Source: Takakia lepidozioides (taxonomy: Eukaryota > Plantae > Bryophyta). From it: a DNA stretch of 64,000 nucleotides. The stretch covers positions 39,680,001-39,744,000 of the forward strand of contig CM060734.1 in the NCBI GenBank assembly GCA_030704615.1, read 5' to 3'. Below, in pieces: positions 14,387-55,960 of this stretch. Within the stretch, counting starts at the first letter, position 1; each line of letters opens with the position of its first letter. The position numbers were made by a program, and so were the translations under genes. Below the pieces are notes generated by a model, which was given only the letters and a program-made list of their open reading frames with translations, was not told the DNA's origin and searched no databases.

Positions 14387-15800
14387 TGAATGTTACGTGG
14401 AGGAGACCAAGATCCCACCAGATTTCCCTGAAAATACGAAATTTACCTTCTAAGATACAACAGGGAAGGTCATGAAGAGCACCAAATGGCTGAGCATTCG
14501 TGCCTGCTGTGCAGAGTGTGGGTGTGAAGGGGTGGAAGCGAAGCACACTAAACCCCATTGCCTCCTCCACCCCATGCTTGCTCTTCACTCCTCCCACAAG
14601 CGTGCGGACTCTCGCCCATGGATGGATGAACTCTGTCAGTCCGACCTAACACCTCAGGCTTGAGTATTCATCCGAATAATTAAAAATTATTTTTATTTTT
14701 ATTTTTATTAATTCAACAATTCTACTAGTTGCTTATTCACGTCCAAGATTTACCTTTAATGCAGTTGAATTAAGCAAATTATTGAGAAGAAAAATCTTTG
14801 TTTAGAATGCAGCTTGTCTAGCTTGCTTAGGGCCACTTTAGTATGCCACATTAATGCACGCTTGTGATATCTCTAGCAAGATTGGACACCGGTTTCCGGC
14901 ATGTCAAATCTTCCCCACCCCCTTTTGCAGATTGGAAAGGGTGAGGGGTTACACTACTATGACGGGGTGACACAGAAGGAAGTATTATTCCACTCTATGT
15001 GTAACTCCCACTTGAACACCTTGTCTCCAAGTTTGATTAACTCCAAATTTGGCTATGTACAAAATGTACTACAATGAGTTACACAAAACACATTGTGACA
15101 CAAACCAGAGGAGCGGGGTTACCCAAACCACAAGAGTCATGGTGACAAAAATTTGGGTGACAATACCACCTACATTTTCCCTTAAGCGCCCATTCGACCC
15201 GTTTTCGGCCGTTGGTTTTGGTTTTTCCCCTCTGTTTTTCTCGGATTTGAACCGATTAACCTGATTTTTGGAGGGTAGGATGCCAGCCACATGGCAGTCA
15301 GGATTCCAACGCGCGATTAGGTTTTTTTGGTTAGGGTTGCAATTTTTGGCTGCGCAGGAGGTGGGGTCTGCTTCTGCAGCGATTTTGGCTTGCTCCCGCG
15401 TTTTCAGCGTCGTCTCTCTCCTTCCCGCGCTTTGCCTTGTGCTGTGATCTCGTCTGTTGTGGCGTTCGCGCGTGTTCCATACTTTGTTGCAGGTTGCCGT
15501 TGCAGATGCCTTGACAGGTTGCCGTTGGTGGTCTGCTCCGATTGCATCTTCCATTATCTCTTTCTCTTTCAGTTGAAGAAACTTGGAAATTGTGGCAACG
15601 CTATAGAGACTGAGCCATAGCTGTGAGAGAGGATGGGCCGGCTTTGCATTGATACTCAGGGTGCGCATTCAAGGCAATGTTCATTGTTTGATACCTGAGC
15701 TAGACTATGCGCAGTTAGGGCATCGTGTAGCTCATCTTTGTGTTTATCCTTGTGTGCATATGCAAATTGGTGGATGAAGGTTGAAGCTACATAGTATAAG

Positions 15801-16182
15801 ATGGGTTCGGGTGTGTTGCCTCCCCCTACACCTGCGCATTTGAAGACTCAAGCTGCATCGATTGCCAAGTGGGCACGCTCACTGGGCGCATCAACCGAGC
15901 AAGTCGAGCGGATTGTCGGGTGCCTGAATGAGGACTACCTCTTGTGTTTGAAGAGACATGCTCGTGTGCGTTGGCCTGGATTTCCACAGCCCTCCAACTT
16001 TCGTTACTTGTTTAGGCGCCATTGTGCAGAGATTTTGGGTTGGGTAGATCGCAAGGAGGAATGAGACCCCCTTGGGTTCAGCGCAGAGGTCAACGACATT
16101 TTGAGGCTCGAGGTTTGGCCTGACTTCCAGACGTCTTCTGCCAGCCACGATGAGGCTCAAACAACTGGCCAGGGAGAGAGGT
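15801..16182 (+). CDS. Upstream ORF or first exon inside the piggyBac, unknown function
   Basis: ATG at 15801. The frame reads on past a single TGA (16062) as DPLGFSAEVNDILRLEVWPDF... to a GT donor-like site AG|GTAATC at ~16180. Confidence 0.4.
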
Positions 16183-18261
16183 AATCGTATTGAACCCTCT
16201 TTTGATTTCATGAGTGAGGAGATGGGCAATTCGACCTACTCCTTGCGCAACTCTCAAAATCCACTATGTGATCCTGCTGGTCACTCCCAAACTATGGAGG
16301 ACATAGGGATTTTGGGATCCACAGTGAAGGTGGCAGTGGCTGAGCTGCACCTTCAGGATGTGGCATCGTCTAGCAATGCCCACGAATTTGGATATGGCAC
16401 TGTGGTAGACAAGACATGGGACATCCTGAATGGTACAAAAAATTATACTGTCTTTTTTTTTGGTGTCATTGGTGTTCATGTGGTATCGTCACAGTCCTGT
16501 GTTGTGTGTAATCTTGATGATTCAATGTTGTGCATTATCCCTGAGCTCTTGGGGTTGGATTCTGAAGTTGAATTGCCTGAGGGGAAAGTAGATGATAGTG
16601 AATCAGATTCTGATTGTGACTATAATCCAGAAGATGATGACCTTGTTGACATCGACAATCCTGACTTGATGGACTACTGTGTTGACACGGGGAATCCAAC
16701 GCGTGAGGTGGGATTATATGATTTGCTACCCAATTGGGAGCAGTGGGGTCCTGCTGAGTTGTTTGGTGATGACATGTAGAACTCCTCTGCTACTGAATTG
16801 CCAGACATTACATGGTTAGGTGGGGATTCGGGTCCTCGTTTGCCTTTTGGAGATTCAGCAAATCCAGTTGATTTTTTCAATTTGTTTTGGCCACTGTCGG
16901 TCATGCGCCGAATTTGCAGCATGACCAACATGTATGCCAGGACAGAAAACCAGAATGGAAACCTGAAAGGAGGTAGATGGTGGTACCCTATCACCATCCG
17001 TGAATTGAAGGCTTGGCTTGCTGTTCACATGCTCATGGGAATCAAAAAATTGCCTAGTACTAGATTGTATTGGAAAGCCAACAATGCCTTCTTCAATTGC
17101 CCTTCCATCATGCGCATTATGTCCCACAACCGATGGGAGGCAATTCTGAGGTGCCTCCACCTTGTTGACAACAAGGATGTATGCATTATTGACACTGACC
17201 CTGCTTTTGATAAGTTAGCTAAAACCAGGTGGTTGCTACATGCACTAAATGGTTTGTATGCCACCTACATGAGCCCCAAGCAGAATTTGACTGTGGATGA
17301 GCAAATGGTGAAGTACAAGGGCAAATATGCCCGAATCCAGCAATACCTAAGCAAGAAGCCTGTGCAGTGGGGTCTGAAGGTGTGGTGTTTGTGTGGTGCA
17401 TGTTCCAAATATGTTCAGAAGTTAGAGGTTTACCTTGGGAAGGATGATGGGAATGATATGACCCATGGCAGTGGATATGGCGTGGTGACAAGGTTACTAG
17501 AAGGATTTGAGGGTAAGGGCCATATTGTAACGATGGATAATTTTTTCAGTAGCCCTATCATGTTCTATGATTTGGCAGCAAAACAGATCTATGCTACTGG
17601 CACGGTAAAAACCTCCCGAGTGGGTTTTCCTACGTGCCTTGATTTGGGGAAGAAGGGTGAGAGAGGTAGGCTGGAATATCGTGTTCACATAAGTGGCAAA
17701 GTAGCCGCTATTGCCTGGATGGATGCCAAGTTGGTGACCATGATTTCCACTGTCATTTCCCCTGTCGGTCCTGATTGCTTCATACAAAGATAGCACAAAG
17801 GGGCAAGACGTGATGTGCCTACCTCCCCTATTGTGGTTCATTACCAGCAGCATATGCGGGGAGTGGATGTTCAGGATCAGCTACGGGGTTACTACTCTGT
17901 TCAGACCAGGGACCATAAATGGTGGCACCGCTTGTACTTTCATGGAGTTGACACTTCTTTGGTGAATGCTTACATATTGTACCTGGGTTTTATGAGGGGA
18001 AAGGGCCACATTCCTCTTAGCCACATGCTTTTCAATTTGGAGGTTGCAAAGGGACTAATTGTGGGGTGGGTTCCTCCCAGGAGAACAGTAATGCCAGAGG
18101 CAGATGTGCCCAACCCGGGGTCTGTGCATTTCTCCCTCAAGACTAGTAGGAGGAGGAAGTGTGTTCAGTGTGGTATGCGTCAAAGATATTTTTGTCACGC
18201 GTGTGGAGATGTGTATATGTGCCTTGGAGGATGCTTTGTCAAGAGCCATAGCCTTCTCTGA
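16150..18261 (+). pseudogene. piggyBac (PGBD, DDE_Tnp_1_7-type) transposase with two in-frame TAG stops
   Basis: ORFs 16150-16779, 16798-17793 and 17815-18261 share one frame. Acidic N-terminal stretch, PVDFFNLFWP, MSHNRWEAILRCLH, catalytic D residues in TVDEQMV, TMDNFF and GVDVQDQ, KWWHRL, and C-terminal Cys-rich domain CVQC..YFCHAC..MCLGGCF..H. Exact start and splicing uncertain. Confidence 0.9.
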
Positions 18262-18693
18262 TTATAGATACTTCTATGTTCAGTAATTGATATGGTTGAT
18301 TTCTTATTGCACTGATGTGGAGACCTTTGATGCCAAAGAGGGGGTATCCTCCTTACGACACTTTTTCTATATAGTGGTGTTCTGTCTTTTTCTAAGCAGT
18401 GGTGTGTTTGGGGGTTGGTTTGTTGTTGGTAGCCATGAAACGTTTGTACTGAGGATCCAGCCGTAGAGAGTCGCTTGACAGTCCAAGGAGAGGTATAATT
18501 TTGTGGTTGTGCAGTATTGGGGTTCACTGAGTCCTGATCTGAATGATTTGTTTGCTACTCCAGCTTTTTGCCTTAGTGTTCATGTAGCTCCGAGGTCTTT
18601 GCTGCAACAATTTTGTGTTTCAATTAGGACTGAGTCCATTTTCTTTGTGTCTAGTATAATTATGTGGTAGTCCCCTAGTCAAGCGGGGGTGCG

Positions 18694-18744
18694 CACAAGG
18701 GTGGAGACTCCTTCCCTCCCTGGGGAGGAGTCTCCCCCCTTGTG
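18694..18744 (+). ncRNA. 23-bp hairpin in the piggyBac 3' region
   Basis: CACAAGGGTGGAGACTCCTTCCC-TCCCT-GGGGAGGAGTCTCCCCCCTTGTG: one mismatch and one G-U pair. Confidence 0.6.
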
Positions 18745-18748
18745 TTCA

Positions 18749-18801
18749 TGTGTGAGTTGCCAATTGGGGCAAGTTAGTGGGTTCAACTCCCACTCACACA
18801 A
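18749..18801 (+). ncRNA. Anticodon-less tRNA-like element 1
   Basis: Acceptor-like stem TGTGTGA/TCACACA, D-like arm TTGCC-AATTGG-GGCAA, T-arm GTGGG-TTCAACT-CCCAC (B-box-like GGTTCAACTCC). Confidence 0.6.
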
Positions 18802-18882
18802 TTCGGCGTGTAAATGTGGGTTCATCTCTAGTTTTTCTGAGTCTGATTTGATGCTAGTGTTGGCCACATGTCGGTCTTTCTT

Positions 18883-18934
18883 TGTGTGAGCTGCCAGTTG
18901 GGCAGGCCACTGGGTTCAATTCCCACTCACACAT
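18883..18934 (+). ncRNA. Anticodon-less tRNA-like element 2
   Basis: TGTGTGAG/CTCACACA stem, CTGCC-AGTTG-GGCAG arm, TGGG-TTCAATT-CCCA T-arm, followed by TTTT (18934-18937). Confidence 0.6.
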
Positions 18935-20250
18935 TTTGACCCCCCTTACTTTGACCAGGTGTAAATCAGAAAATATGAATCCATTTTTTGCATTCTATGG
19001 CTCATCAGAATGCCAATGTGCTGGACAACACCTGTAAGCAGGATGAGATCCTGCAGATTTCATCCCGTCAGTGAAAATTGCAAATTCCTCCAATTTCCCT
19101 TATTGTTTTGGGAGGGGCCCAAAAAATGGGCCCCACACTCAACGGTGGCGTTTCTCGGATTTTCGCCTGATTAGCCTGCAAATTTACCGGTGTCTGGAAG
19201 GGGTAGGTATGAGCATAATGTCCGGTCAATTTTCCCAAAAACTGTTTTTTCGCTGAGATATTCTCATTTTTCTGTGCTGGGGTCCACTTTTTTCAAAAAG
19301 TCAACATTGGGCACTGGGCGCTTAAGGGTTAAAGTACCAAGATAAATTCAGGAAACAATGTCCATGAAAATGTGATGGATTCAAGTCTTATAAAACGTTC
19401 AACGTTTTTTTTAATAATGGTCACGTTTATTTCATGGTCCTTATTTTATTTCGATTGGAAAATGTTTTATGCGAAATTTTTCCGTCTTGCAATCATAATT
19501 TTTTGGGTATAGTAACGATGCTTTTACTCAGCTATCAATACAAATTTGTTGAGATTTTACTTGATTTGAATTTTGATATAAATTACATGTATTTTCAGAA
19601 AACAATTCCCAATGTGGTCTCAACAACTTATGTACCTATGCATCATAGATAAGATGTGTTATATTAAATGTCATGAACATGTAAGTCTGTCAAGTATCCT
19701 TATATCTACTTCAGCAATTCGATGAACGAGATACTAGAAATGCAACTACGGATGGGCAATGATCGTTTGTCATTTATGAGCCATGAGTACTAATATAACC
19801 ACGTCTTACAAGATTAATTTCTTTTTTTTGGCAATTAGGGCAGCTTAAAATAAACGTCAATGATAGGGCAGTTGACGCAGATGACCGTGGCACTCAGGAC
19901 CCCATTTCTGTTCTATACACTAAAATTAGTCTCTGACTTTCTGTGGTCATTAGAATTTTAATAGTGAATCTGAAGTAAGTGAGGGTGGGGGGAATTTGAC
20001 GGTGCCCGTCAGAGGAGTTGATGTTGCCTGAATCTAGCATGAAGAAAGTATAGTTAGATCACACTCTGCATCAAGTTCTAGGCTTACAATATTCCTATTG
20101 TTTTCCGTTAAGAAGTGCCAAAAAGCAAAATACTGTACTTTAATATAAGCTGCCACCAAACCATCTTTTATGGTATGTTCTTAATTCCAAGTTTCTTTTT
20201 TACTTAAAACAACACTTGTGCCTCGTCCCATTATCAAAGAATAGTCTTGT

Positions 20251-20793
20251 TTGTTCCTCCTTCAGAAGCCCAAGGAATAATGGTGTCATTTTCATTCTAT
20301 AGCTATTTTTCCAATACATACACACTCTATCTCAAACCACCTGGCAGGAAATCGTACTCTTTGTACCGACATACTGAGAGAAACAACGTACTTCGTTGAA
20401 TCTGGGAGCTGGAATCACTGACATATTCATTCTTTTTTACTCGATGGAGCATATCATCATAGTTTTGCTCTTTGATCCCACTATGAGAGCCTTGTAGGCG
20501 ACATCTTGTATCAGGAGTCAAAGTGTTGTCTACCTTGCAATAGGTTTGTTCCTCCTTCAGAAGCTCAAGGAATAATGGCGTCATTTTCATCCTATAGCAA
20601 TTTCTACAATATATACACTCTTTCTCAAATCACTTGGCATGAGAATTGTACTTTTTGTACATGCATACTGAGAGAAACAATGTACTGCGTTGAATCTAGG
20701 AGGAATCATCAACATATTGAATTGTTTTGGACTTGATCAAGCATATCATCATAGTTTTGCTCTTGATTCCGCCAAAGGAGGCTCCTAGGCGAC
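20251..20793. repeat. Diverged tandem duplication, ~296-bp period
   Basis: TTGTTCCTCCTTCAGAAGC.CAAGGAATAATGG.GTCATTTTCA at 20251 and 20547. GCATATCATCATAGTTTTGCTC at ~20449 and ~20741. Confidence 0.85.
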
Positions 20794-22149
20794 ATAATCT
20801 AAAGATGCTTAGTGGCCGCTGCCCGAATGCTTGGGGAACAAGCCTATAAGTCCATTGATTTTATGCGTTACTGACTTGTTTTATTCAACCAAGGCGCCCA
20901 ACGGTAGGCTGTGAATACCAGTTGTCAATTGTCACAAAAGAGTTGTTCTGGCAGAGCCGTCGATCAATCCACACAAAGTGTTTTTTGTTGTTCAATCAAT
21001 GAATTGCTCTCAAATTTTGGCGCGGGCAAACTTGGATTGCACCAACTTGCGCCACTTTCGGATCAACAATTTTCTTGAGCATGCATGAGAGTGCGCAAAG
21101 TGCTCTCATTGTGTCGCACCTTGAGTGTTTGACTAGCGATGTCATCAAGCTCCAGGGCGATACGACCAAGATCCAGGGCGATACCAAAGCAATGAACTTG
21201 AGGCTCGATTCTTCGGAGAACAAAGTGGTTTCAATGAGCAAGTTCAATCCCTTTTGCGGACACATTTCTAATTAGGGTAAATTCAATTTCGATTCATTCT
21301 TTTCTGTTTCTTGTAACTAGCTAATTTCTGGATTGTTTCTCGATTGGCTAGAGACTCATTCATGTTGTAGTGGATTTTTACTCTAATGTGATTCTAATCA
21401 TCGTGTCCTGGTTTCTATGGAGGTTGCTGCCAAATTTCGATTGTACAATTATGAGGAGAAATTCTTGCATCTACGTGTTTTCGAAAAATTTAATTTCATC
21501 CACAAAACTATAACCATAACCAACTCTGTTGTTGTTGTTGTTGATACTGAAATATAATCTATTATCTTATGTGATTGCTACTAGCCTCCATGAATTACTC
21601 AACTAGATAATTATAGACCTATGGCAATCATTGTAGTCTTCGGATTCTTCTGATCAAAGGTTTTTTTGTTGGACAAAAGTTGTCGTGGTTGACAATTGTT
21701 TGCATAGTTACAATGAGCTTTGGGTTCCAGTTTTACCAATTATAGCATTTATTACAAAGATGAGTAATGATCTTATGACACCGCAGGCGTGAATGTTGCT
21801 ACTATAGATACGAATGGAAGCTCAATGATAGATAGTCCAAACGTGAATGTTCCATTATTAAGTTCTACAACCAATACTGTTGATCAAAATCGTTCGAAGC
21901 GAAGAGATGCGGTAGCAAACTAGATGCACATGATGTGGATGACGTTATCAATAAACAATTTCGGTTTAGCCCAAACCATCAGGTTGTCATTTTTCATGTA
22001 TAAACCAAAAAGTGCAGAAAAAGATGGCAACAAATATTGGTAGTTGTGTCATTTGATTAAGTCTGTCTCCACAAATCAAGTTGTAAAGAATTCAAACAAC
22101 ATTTGGCCATCTTTTAAGTATTGCTCAACTATTTTCTCAACTATTGGGT

Positions 22150-52941: not shown

Positions 52942-55223
52942 TCAATAACAATGTGCAGGTAAACGGGGTTCCCCAATCACGTGCAATGGGTTCGCCCGAG
53001 GCATGGTGACCCCGAATTTCTCAGTCATGTCCAGGTCTTTGGGATCCTGATTGTTGGGCAGCTTGAAGTTGAAACTGTGGACGAGACGAGCAAGCCCGAT
53101 CTGCACAAAGAGAATCCCCAGAGGCATTCCTGGGCAGATCCTTCTTCCTGCGCCGAATGGCAACAACTGGAAATGGTTACCCTTCATATCAATTTCAGGA
53201 TTTTTAACGAATCTCTCAGGGTCGAACTCCAAAGGCCTTTCCCAACTGGCTGGGTCCCGCTGGATGGCATAGGCGTTGAGGAACATGCGAGTGTTGGCTG
53301 GTATGTCATAGCCTCTCACTGTGCAGGGCTCAATGGACATATGTGGCAGGGACAAAGGTGCTGGGGGATAAAGGCGGAAAACCTCCTTCACAACCGCTTG
53401 CAGGTAGGGTAGGTTCACAATGTCTGTCTCATCGACTGGGCGGTCACAGCCCACCACAGCGTCCAACTCAGCTTGCGCTTTCTTCATCACATCTGGATGA
53501 CGCAGGAGTGCCGCCACAGCCCACTCTACTGTGTTTGATGATGTGTCCGTCCCTGCCAGAAGCATGTCCTGCACATGCAGCCCTCAACACAGTTACAAGT
53601 GGAACAAAAATCTTCCAACCCGGCGAACAAAACTTTGATAAATTCCTGCTGTCCAACTTCTCTCATAGCGTGCACGCCTTTTCAATTTAACCCTCCATGG
53701 AGGAAGCAATATATTCTACTCCCTGCCTCATATCCCCTCTACACCGAAGTGAAGTCAATTCGTTGCTAGTTCTAAGTGGCCCACAACTGAAGTTGAACTC
53801 TTGGCTAAGGCAAGATTACCGCAGTGGAACTACGGTCTAGGGTAGGTGTACAATTATGGTTCAAAGAGTTCAAACCGTCAATCGTCCTTAAAGCTCTACT
53901 TTGCATTACATGAAGGCAGCTGCTTTCTCTTGAAATGTTTCAGATTGTTACCTGGATCACAGACTTGATCGTCTCGTCAGACAGTTGACCCTTTCCATCT
54001 GCGGAGGGCATGGATAAGAGCACATCAACGAAGTCCTTGGAATCCTCGTCGATCTCATCTGCTCCTTTCCGAGCGAGTCCACCCTTCTTGCTTTCTACGA
54101 ATGTTTGAAGAAATTCGTCTATATCTTTCTTCACCTTACGCATATAGGCTACGTAGCCTGATGCATATGTGACCCAGCTTAGCCACGGAATGAAATCGCC
54201 AACGATAAGTGCGGAATTCGCACTGAACAAGGTGAAAACGAGTTCTTTGAAGCGGTGGGCTTGCCCCTGCCCCGCCGTGTCCAACCCAAAGAACCTACAA
54301 CCACAACGACTTCTTACGTTAATAACAGTGCCATCTCTAAGCTGCAGAGACCTTCAGAACCGGAAGTGCAACCAATTCAAGATCTTCTGAAAAACCTTCA
54401 AAGCCAGGGGTTATCCACGGGTAGCTAAACTTGTGCTTAGTGGTTCAGCTCCCAGTAACACTCTAGTCTGCAGTCCTTGTGGAGCTCGAGAATGTGCTAG
54501 GTTAGATAACAAGACCACCTTTAAGTATTTGCAATTGGCAATGCCGCTGAGCATTAGTTTCGCCTAGAGTACTGAATATGTTCCATACCTCTTGTTCAAC
54601 ATCATGCGAGTAATGTTGTTGGTAGCGAGATGTCCCAGCTTGACATTGAGCTCCACTACCTTTCCCTTCTGAATGTCATCCATGATGGAGCTCACCATGT
54701 GATTCACCTCGTCAGTCCTAGGGGGGCGGAAAGCGTCCAGCCGCTTGCTTGTGAAGAGCTCCAGGGTGCAGATCTTTCGCAAATGACGCCAGTATGGACC
54801 ATAGGGAGCCACCACAATGTTTGTATAGTGGTTAGAGAAGATCTCTCCAGATATGGATGGAGGGCGACCTGCGAACGACTTGTCATGGGTTTTGTGGAAT
54901 TCCATTGCTGCTTCAGCAGAGGAGACGACAACGAGGGGATAGGAGCCCAAGTGCATGTACATGATGGGTCCGTAGATTTTAGAAAGCGCCGTCAGGCTAT
55001 GCTGTGGAGAGGTGCCAATCTGGAGAATATTGCCTATGATGGGCCATGGGCGCGGTCCCGGGGGAAGTTTGCTCTTTTTCCCAAAGAGACTCCTGGCCAC
55101 CACGATTGTAAGTATGCTCACAAGCACAGCAGCTATGATCGCCTCACGAGACAGCGACCATGCACCACCTTGAGCCAACTGAGTGATCACAGAGGAATCA
55201 CCCTCCGAATAGTCGGACTCCAT
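52942..55223 (-). CDS. Cytochrome P450, CYP71 clan (A-type), 3 exons
   Basis: Exons 55223-54589, 54294-53952 and 53568-52942. TM anchor, LPPGP, YGPYWRHLRK, AGTDTS, EVFR, PERF and heme motif PFGAGRRICPG. Confidence 0.95.
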
Positions 55224-55416: not shown

Positions 55417-55896
55417 AAGCGCGAGCGCCCAATTCTCAATTGTTTCCCCAGATGTGAAGACTACAGGTAGCACGGAAGCTTTTGAGGTAAAGTCTTTGCT
55501 TTATATCCTAATTCCTCACCGAGCAATTCATATTTTAGTCACTGTGTTCGTACTTTAGTGTCTCGCTCGTTTGACTGGGCGTCAACTTACGTAAGTCAAG
55601 CAGCCCTCGTGTGGTGTTGTCAGCCGCCGGCGTGGGTTACACTGCCCTGGCTAATTTTTAACTTACGGCGTGAATAGTGTATCCATTTATGGTGACACTT
55701 AGGATTTTACCAGTGTTGGCCGGGTATGGCATCTTGACATGCATATCCGGCGGTTATTTGCCGGTTATGCACATGTGCATGATCGGAAAGTGCAGCCCCT
55801 GCAGGAACCTTAGTTGGGCATTTGGCATTTGGCTAAGACAATAGTTGTAAGTTGTAAGCTTAGTGTATTAGAGGGGCAGGGGCGGAGAGATAGATG

Positions 55897-55960
55897 ACAG
55901 GTTTGAACCCGAGACCCACAACCAAGACTCTAGTGGCTTATCTCCAGGCCACAGCCCTTT
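55897..55960 (-). mobile_element. Possible degenerate tRNA-derived SINE head
   Basis: Minus strand has A-box-like TGGCCTGGAGATAAG and B-box-like GGGTTCAAACC about 45 nt apart. Confidence 0.3.

Follow-up and report, generated by a model that had tools for sequence, protein, structure and literature searches.

Anticodon-less tRNA-like units downstream of the transposase in a piggyBac lineage of Takakia lepidozioides

Introduction

tRNA-like processing signals in transcripts of RNA polymerase II (Pol II) are known, to our knowledge, from very few cases, namely, MALAT1, NEAT1, organellar t-elements, and some viruses. In this work, we focus on two tRNA-like units located downstream of the transposase gene of a piggyBac transposon in the bryophyte Takakia lepidozioides. 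The transposon lies in a stretch of 64,000 nucleotides (nt) of assembly GCA_030704615.1 (contig CM060734.1, positions 39,680,001 to 39,744,000 of the forward strand), which is hereafter called the window and from whose first letter all positions are counted.

Among the systems described so far, mascRNA and menRNA, belonging to MALAT1 and NEAT1/MEN-beta, respectively, share with the present units a tRNA-like fold; theirs lies in a Pol II transcript and is cut by RNase P and RNase Z, which yields a 3' end and a small tRNA-like RNA (PMC4919922, PMC12941219). They are single modules of vertebrate long non-coding RNAs (lncRNAs), with a U-rich/A-rich triple helix upstream and a short anticodon-like stem, whereas the units considered here are present once or more in a plant DNA transposon, lack an anticodon arm, follow a G/C hairpin or a G-run, and are known from sequence alone. 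Plant mitochondrial t-elements are also partial tRNA-like structures, which act at mRNA ends as signals for the protein-only RNase P (PRORP) and RNase Z (PMC4919922). However, they are organellar, host-encoded, and immobile, whereas the units described here belong to the nuclear genome, reside in a transposon, and retain a D-like arm. The ENE triple helices of plant transposons (e.g., Evade/Copia93) are, likewise, structured RNA that a transposon encodes within the 3' portion of its own transcript (PMC12501189), but they clamp the poly(A) tail, whereas the present units mimic a tRNA.

With regard to mobile elements derived from tRNA, short interspersed elements (SINEs) have A-box- and B-box-like letters and a T-arm-like hairpin in common with the present units. 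The latter differ in having neither a target-site duplication nor a tail of the long interspersed element (LINE) type or an A-rich tail, in not being dispersed, and in having boxes spaced too closely to make a tRNA-type promoter. Mimicry of tRNA within the 3' portion of coding RNAs is also seen in plants, in the 3'-end tRNA-like structures of viruses and in the tRNA-like motifs of mobile mRNAs. The viral structures are located at the extreme 3' end and are aminoacylated, the motifs of mobile mRNAs are whole tRNAs or anticodon/T-arm parts, and neither is known from a DNA transposon. No account of tRNA-like modules, whether in piggyBac or in other DNA transposons, was retrieved by full-text literature searches. 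An earlier, sequence-only reading of the window had known of no such piggyBac cassette.

Structure of the tRNA-like units

The element and the cassette that follows its transposase are composed as follows, all features lying on the forward strand.

15179..19328 (+): piggyBac element, with 14-bp terminal inverted repeats (TIRs), TTAA on the right, and the transposase inside
16150..18261 (+): piggyBac transposase (DDE_Tnp_1_7), in one frame, Pfam PF13843
18676..18686 (+): A-box-like TAGTCAAGCGG, matching 9/11 positions of TRGCNNAGTGG
18694..18744 (+): G/C-rich hairpin, 23-nt arms and 5-nt loop
18749..18800 (+): tRNA-like unit 1, with acceptor-, D-, and T-like arms, 17/17 pairs, 82.8 bits with covariance model R1
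18802..18882 (+): spacer, containing a run of five T and a decayed T-arm-like stretch (18815-18829), fold z -0.79
18883..18933 (+): tRNA-like unit 2, of the same architecture, 16/17 pairs, 77.3 bits with R1

The hairpin, both units, the A-box-like site, and two T-runs (five T at 18832-18836, and four T at 18934-18937, directly after unit 2) had been listed in the sequence-only reading, and all were recovered at the same positions. The units are direct repeats of about 52 nt each, consisting in order of a 7-bp acceptor, one free base, a 5-bp D-like arm, a 4-nt linker, a T-like arm, and the 3' strand of the acceptor. In unit 1, the D-like loop is AATTGG and the T-like loop, closing a 5-bp arm, is TTCAACT; the corresponding loops of unit 2 are AGTTG and TTCAATT. 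Neither unit has an anticodon arm, and just 3-4 nt separate the D and T arms. For each of them, the minimum free energy (MFE) structure is an acceptor-like stem (7-8 bp) around the D-like and T-like hairpins, with z -3.05 for unit 1 and -2.62 for unit 2; none of the shuffled sequences folded as well as unit 1, and 2 out of 200 did so for unit 2. MFE folds and pair counts hence agree with the arms that had been proposed in that reading. The same holds for the compensatory change proposed in the D stem, where a T-A pair of unit 1 corresponds to a C-G pair in unit 2. In total, the units differ at 5 of 18 unpaired and 3 of 34 paired positions, two of these three being the compensatory pair, a contrast between loops and stems that, with two sequences, is a trend only (Fisher p 0.11). 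The arms of the upstream hairpin (18694-18716 and 18722-18744) are 91% complementary and fold with -46.4 kcal/mol (z -8.0 versus shuffles); they have no other match, hence no target, in the 64-kb window.

A strict descriptor, comprising a 7-bp acceptor, a D hairpin, and a T hairpin with a TTCRANN loop, matched only units 1 and 2 in the window, and three sites in 20 Mb of composition-matched Markov-random sequence; chance is thereby excluded as an explanation of the units. The B-box consensus GGTTCRANNCC has three matches in the window, all of them within this piggyBac, and model R1, which was built from units 1 and 2, found no further full unit in the 64 kb.

The units are tRNA-like in parts and are not tRNA genes, since ARAGORN reported no tRNA gene in the 64-kb window and the best Rfam match of the tRNA clan there, to tRNA-Sec, reached 17.8 bits (E 9.3), the gathering score being 47. 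The Rfam matches to Plastid-ycf2, mir-9193, and tRNA-Sec were discarded, all being far under their thresholds, so that the check suggested in the sequence-only reading, by Rfam and a tRNA gene finder, did not recognise the units as tRNA. They nevertheless carry the T54-T55-C56-R57-A58 T-loop, the G18 G19 D-loop, and the 12-bp acceptor/T stack of tRNAs. Over four units, namely, the two of the window and two from distant relatives described below (L011 and L012), the T-loops read TTCAACT, TTCAATT, TTCAATT, and TTCAAAT, the D-loops end in GG, and acceptor and T stems add up to 12 bp (7+5, 8+4, or 6+6). Within a unit, about 12 nt separate the A-like box from the B-like box, versus at least about 30 in tRNA genes, and the units are flanked by no target-site duplication, LINE-type tail, or A-rich tail. 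An independent tRNA-derived SINE was rejected on these grounds and because R1 matches lie only inside the piggyBac and sibling contigs are few. The cassette is part of the piggyBac, as had been supposed, its units being found only inside the element and retained in sibling copies.

The host element

The 14-bp TIR CCCTTAAGCGCCCA is located at 15179-15192 and recurs inverted at 19315-19328. The element is flanked by TTAA on the right (19329-19332) and by TTTT on the left (15175-15178), two changes away from TTAA. It belongs to the piggyBac superfamily, having a DDE_Tnp_1_7 transposase as well as ends that agree with the short TIRs beginning CCC...GGG and the TTAA target duplication of that superfamily. 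The window copy is dead, because two in-frame stops (16777-16779 and 17791-17793) interrupt its transposase. The gene was not read through these stops, and its three pieces were searched separately, matching Pfam PF13843 with E 8.6e-66 for piece 2 and 2e-06 for piece 3.

Conservation in sibling copies

Sibling copies were sought among contigs of public sequencing runs, aligned to positions 17800-19400 at 80% likeness; the evidence consists of assembled contigs only. Run X4 is a DNA run with the same organism label, X2 a DNA run labelled plant metagenome, and X6 and X7 are guessed to be RNA. In each of X4 and X2, one copy is nearly identical to the window sequence, showing 9-11 differences over about 700-800 nt, and further contigs of both runs overlap certain blocks only, namely, the transposase end, 18718-18825, 18880-18933, and 18934-19365. 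Contigs of X4, X2, X6, and X7 that are at least 80% alike cover 18722-18803 and 18885-18933, whereas no additional sibling contig at 80% likeness was found over 18286-18663 or over the spacer bin 18826-18879, the latter being covered only by the copy's own contig. The units have thus been kept, since sibling contigs cover them, next to 3' sequence that has diverged. DNA run X4 contains about six sibling contigs that overlap with the units, as would be expected of a small transposon family and not of a SINE.

Runs X6 and X7 have no copy at 99% or above and cover only 9-11 of 30 bins, their contigs falling on the same conserved blocks; this pattern fits transcriptomes better than genomic DNA. 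In X6, record 20 (712 nt) joins the coding end of the transposase (18217-18262) to unit 1 (18735-18803) through 367 letters that cannot be aligned to the 472 of the window. In siblings, conservation of the units is no lower than that of the coding end, whereas the sequence in between has diverged. From this one contig, in a run that is only guessed to be RNA, the units appear to be co-transcribed with the transposase open reading frame (ORF).

The hairpin is more variable. In a contig of X2, 48 nt of it are replaced by ACA (joint 18692>18741), and other siblings have a version of about 10 bp in which the base alone is kept (CACAAGGGG / CCCCTTGTG), as seen in loose contig ends before 18735. An extra G after 18899 was observed in contigs of X4, X2, and X7, which turns the D-loop of unit 2 into AGTTGG, as in unit 1; the window would have either a 1-nt deletion at this position or a G-run collapsed in assembly.

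Distant relatives and covariation

Protein collections contained no close sibling of the window transposase, the best relatives being about 40-55% identical, and its 337-residue piece had one protein match, at 39% identity. DNA of the relatives was fetched around the closest protein matches, and roughly 100 kb of loci were searched; the alignment-based search for relatives was dominated by the family of its first row. Units were found in two transposase lineages that are 48-55% identical in protein to that of the window, which, together with the sibling contigs, bears out the expectation that other copies would carry them. A tRNA-like fold following an ORF is seen in three lineages; in mascRNA-type elements, the fold comes after the functional part of a Pol II transcript, and the evidence of co-transcription here is the one X6 contig.

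Locus L011 is a metagenome contig of the European Nucleotide Archive, whose protein P0040 is 49-55% identical to transposase pieces 2 and 3 of the window. It carries a single unit (2133-2182) in sense orientation, about 90 nt past the transposase stop, with 16/16 pairs and the same three-way fold as its MFE structure. It is the sole match to the strict descriptor in all fetched loci, where about 0.015 matches would be expected by chance in about 100 kb. Two close copies of L011 come from other samples: L026 has one acceptor mismatch, and the L027 contig stops inside the unit. Locus L012, a Logan contig with protein P0043 (48% identical), is an internally deleted element with a single, degenerate unit (1408-1459), likewise in sense orientation and about 190 nt past the stop, which scores 15.1 bits with R1 and retains 13/17 pairs.

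Stem pairs were counted by script on a structural alignment parsed by hand, because MAFFT misaligned the acceptor of the distant unit. Between unit 1 of the window and the L011 unit, 4 stem pairs are identical and the other 12 of 16 are changed on both sides, all of them pairing in both sequences. The acceptor is TGTGTGA/TCACACA in unit 1 and TCCAATT/GATTGGA in L011, the D stem TGCC/GGCA versus CCAC/GTGG, and the T stem GTGGG/CCCAC versus TCAGG/CCTGG. The T-loop TTCAAYT, the TT..GG of the D-loop, and the 12-bp stack of acceptor and T stem are unchanged.

No unit was detected in L001, L002, L010, L013, L014, L015, L016, or L017-L021, nor, by a loose motif scan only, in L022-L025. The module is therefore absent from several lineages and marks one sub-lineage, not piggyBac in general. 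Two B-box matches in L010 were dismissed as chance, lying antisense within coding sequence. A pattern scan and a protein scan of metagenomes gave no matches, and a broad T-arm pattern run on viral contigs found 7 loci that are apparently ordinary tRNA genes (not inspected individually).

Some further features accompany the units. In each of the three lineages, the first unit comes immediately after a G-rich run (window 18680-18700, L011 2118-2132, and L012 1384-1407), which could form a G-quadruplex or a 3'-end cap. After the unit, L011 (2185-2325) and L026 (1697-1818) have a small hairpin (TTCATGTT..AACATGAA), and then tandem repeats (about 16-25 nt) in which GATGAATTGTGTTTTT and GGTTCATGAA occur. 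Strings of the GGTTCAT type recur at 18579, 18743, and 18817 of the window and in L012.

A candidate mRNA-processing module and its alternatives

We tentatively favour, at somewhat less than an even chance, the reading that the units are a conserved, structure-constrained module in the 3' untranslated region of the transposase mRNA, which would be cut by PRORP and RNase Z and leave an mRNA ending at the hairpin or G-run. This model is preferred because the 12-bp acceptor/T helix, the T-loop, the GG of the D-loop, and a dispensable anticodon arm are the features that those enzymes read. The determinants for PRORP reside in the tRNA body, a G18 mutation abolishes cleavage by PRORP1, substrates devoid of the anticodon stem-loop are cut by human nuclear RNase P, and non-tRNA substrates of RNase P are known, namely, plant t-elements and the tRNA-like structures of MALAT1 and MEN-beta (PMC4919922). 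In the proposed sequence of events, the units would be transcribed by Pol II along with the transposase ORF, nuclear RNase P, which in land plants is the protein-only PRORP, would cut on their 5' side, and RNase Z on their 3' side. The transcript would thus be severed downstream of the ORF, so that the G/C-rich hairpin or the G-run located immediately before the units would become the end of the mRNA, and the cuts would release small tRNA-like RNAs. The model starts from the presence of the units, their non-random structure, their conservation with compensatory changes, and their constant position and orientation; from these, we infer action at the RNA level, recognition by PRORP and RNase Z, and a benefit to the transposon. 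Structure and conservation are solid for so few sequences, and the function put forward is a model. The broader proposal, that a plant piggyBac lineage evolved miniature anticodon-less tRNA mimics, set as an array in the transposase 3' UTR and hijacking PRORP and RNase Z for a poly(A)-independent, hairpin-capped mRNA 3' end and for tRNA-like small RNAs, is possible and, to our mind, rather doubtful. Were it true, a mascRNA-type system would for the first time be found beyond the lncRNAs of vertebrates, and for the first time in a DNA transposon. In that case, plant PRORP and RNase Z would gain a natural minimal set of substrates of about 50 nt in which covariation is already present, and a compact module for 3'-end formation or RNA release could be obtained for plant vectors and for vectors based on piggyBac. 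The units also mark a piggyBac lineage in bryophyte-type plants, where the superfamily has been little studied.

Several points weigh against such processing. The module is known from three lineages only, all represented by decayed copies, and the statistics come mainly from one distant unit, that of L011; neither the L011 nor the L012 unit reaches a significant fold z-score, and the latter is degenerate. L014 has no unit across a complete 3' region up to the TIR. No A-rich or U-rich motif of a mascRNA-type triple helix is present in 18600-18748, where a G/C-rich hairpin is found, and an mRNA severed from its poly(A) tail would need another stabiliser. PRORP/RNase Z cleavage, the RNA ends, and CCA addition are predicted from fold and position. 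With regard to the strand, the loop letters fit the tRNA consensus solely on the transposase-sense strand, in an orientation that is constant in the three lineages, and two G.U pairs in the L011 unit favour that strand. In contrast, three C.A mismatches of the L012 unit become G.U pairs when the opposite strand is read, and the antisense sequence of this unit also folds better. Wobble-pair counts consequently favour neither strand, and this split may be mutational noise, both copies being dead. Finally, a decayed unit lies in inverted orientation at the left end of the element, which an mRNA 3'-UTR role leaves unexplained.

15233..15291 (-): decayed third unit, at 55-113 bp from the left end and scoring 18.6 bits (model R1, window-wide E 0.0014)

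It contains GGTTCAAATCC, the third match to the B-box/T-loop pattern, and keeps 18 of 24 letters of linker and T-arm, its acceptor pairing being lost (4/7). Units pointing outward at both ends, as is usual for subterminal binding sites, fit a role at the DNA level better than one in an mRNA. The GGTTCAAYTCC B-box could then serve as extra TFIIIC sites that protect the element from silencing, or the units could be palindromic subterminal sites of a dimeric protein such as the transposase, whose half-sites would change together as specificity drifts and so imitate covariation. Every unit fits the B-box consensus GGTTCRANNCC, and the counts of G.U and C.A favour no strand. We nevertheless consider such a role unlikely, as three separate stems covary and the exact tRNA letters of the T- and D-loops are kept, whereas a B-box needs no acceptor or D pairing. 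Further, the transposase sites known in piggyBac are found no more than about 100 bp from the element end, and the right-hand units are 395-580 bp away from it. The lost pairing of the left copy and the constant orientation relative to the transposase also speak against sites on DNA. It is improbable as well that an ancestral piggyBac took up a fragment of a tRNA or tRNA-SINE on one occasion and duplicated it internally, the units being its decaying remains without function. All copies seen do sit in dead elements, with stops or deletions, decayed fragments occur at 18815-18829, at 15233-15291, and in L012, and several related lineages are without the module. However, had the units decayed neutrally while transposase identity dropped to about 50%, one would not find 16/16 pairs, 12 of them changed on both sides, together with intact loops; sibling units are at least 80% alike and the neighbouring 3' sequence is not, the units are not dispersed independently in the window, and neither Rfam tRNA models nor ARAGORN recognise them.

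The sequence-only reading had considered transcription by RNA polymerase III (Pol III), and an independent Pol III gene for a hairpin and tRNA-like small RNA would start from the A-box-like site at 18676 or from a TATA-like TATAATTA at 18656, use the B-box of unit 1, and stop at the run of five T at 18832. Fusions of tRNA-like RNAs and hairpins made by Pol III exist in the gammaherpesvirus MHV68. The A-like box, the B-box, and T-runs of five and four are all present in the window copy, with the TATA-like motif some 30 nt ahead of the hairpin. Still, such a gene is very unlikely. C replaces the first T of TAGTCAAGCGG in the nearly identical copy of other samples, the boxes within a unit are too close, a T-run directly follows just one of the four units and neither that of L011 nor that of L012, the hairpin is variable in siblings and absent in relatives, and the X6 contig links the coding end to unit 1. 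The interpretation of the cassette as a set of tRNA mimics is thus retained in part. Its core agrees with stems that covary around fixed D- and T-loop letters, the signature expected of a substrate of RNase P and RNase Z, and returns us to mRNA processing as the preferred reading. The parts concerning Pol III and the two proposed small-RNA products are not supported. The spacer of about 81 nt is common to no sibling contig at 80% likeness, and the relatives have one unit and no spacer; the long hairpin, shortened or replaced in siblings, is represented by a G-run alone in L011 and L012.

Other features of the element and the window

Apart from the cassette, two features of the element were recorded.

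15801..16064 (+): small ORF of 87 residues, upstream of the transposase, without homologue
18969..19328 (+): 3' subterminal region, common to many sibling contigs

The small ORF had no Pfam match and no homologue in protein searches, and is unlike an 89-residue ORF at the equivalent position in L001. In the subterminal region, the segment 19151-19215 weakly resembles 15237-15290 at the left end in direct, not inverted, orientation, the similarity starting with TTTCTCGGATTT, and the right-hand block is the one most often shared by sibling contigs. The motif GTATAATT(T/A)TGTGGT occurs twice in the window, at 18493-18507 and 18654-18668, and it is the second copy that places the TATA-like TATAATTA ahead of the hairpin. 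Just outside the piggyBac, at 20249-20800, a segment of about 295 bp is tandemly duplicated with 73-88% identity (repeat families D1, D2, D3, D6, and D8).

Elsewhere in the window, a unit-like string at 53219-53245 was set aside as a chance look-alike of the D and T letters; it lies within a cytochrome P450 exon (53100-53400, minus strand), the translation of which has the heme-binding FGAGRRICPG. On the same strand, tRNA-like letters at 55890-55960 (GCCACTAGAG..TTGG..GGGTTCAAACC) are unrelated to the piggyBac units and may belong to a tRNA pseudogene or form the head of a SINE derived from tRNA.

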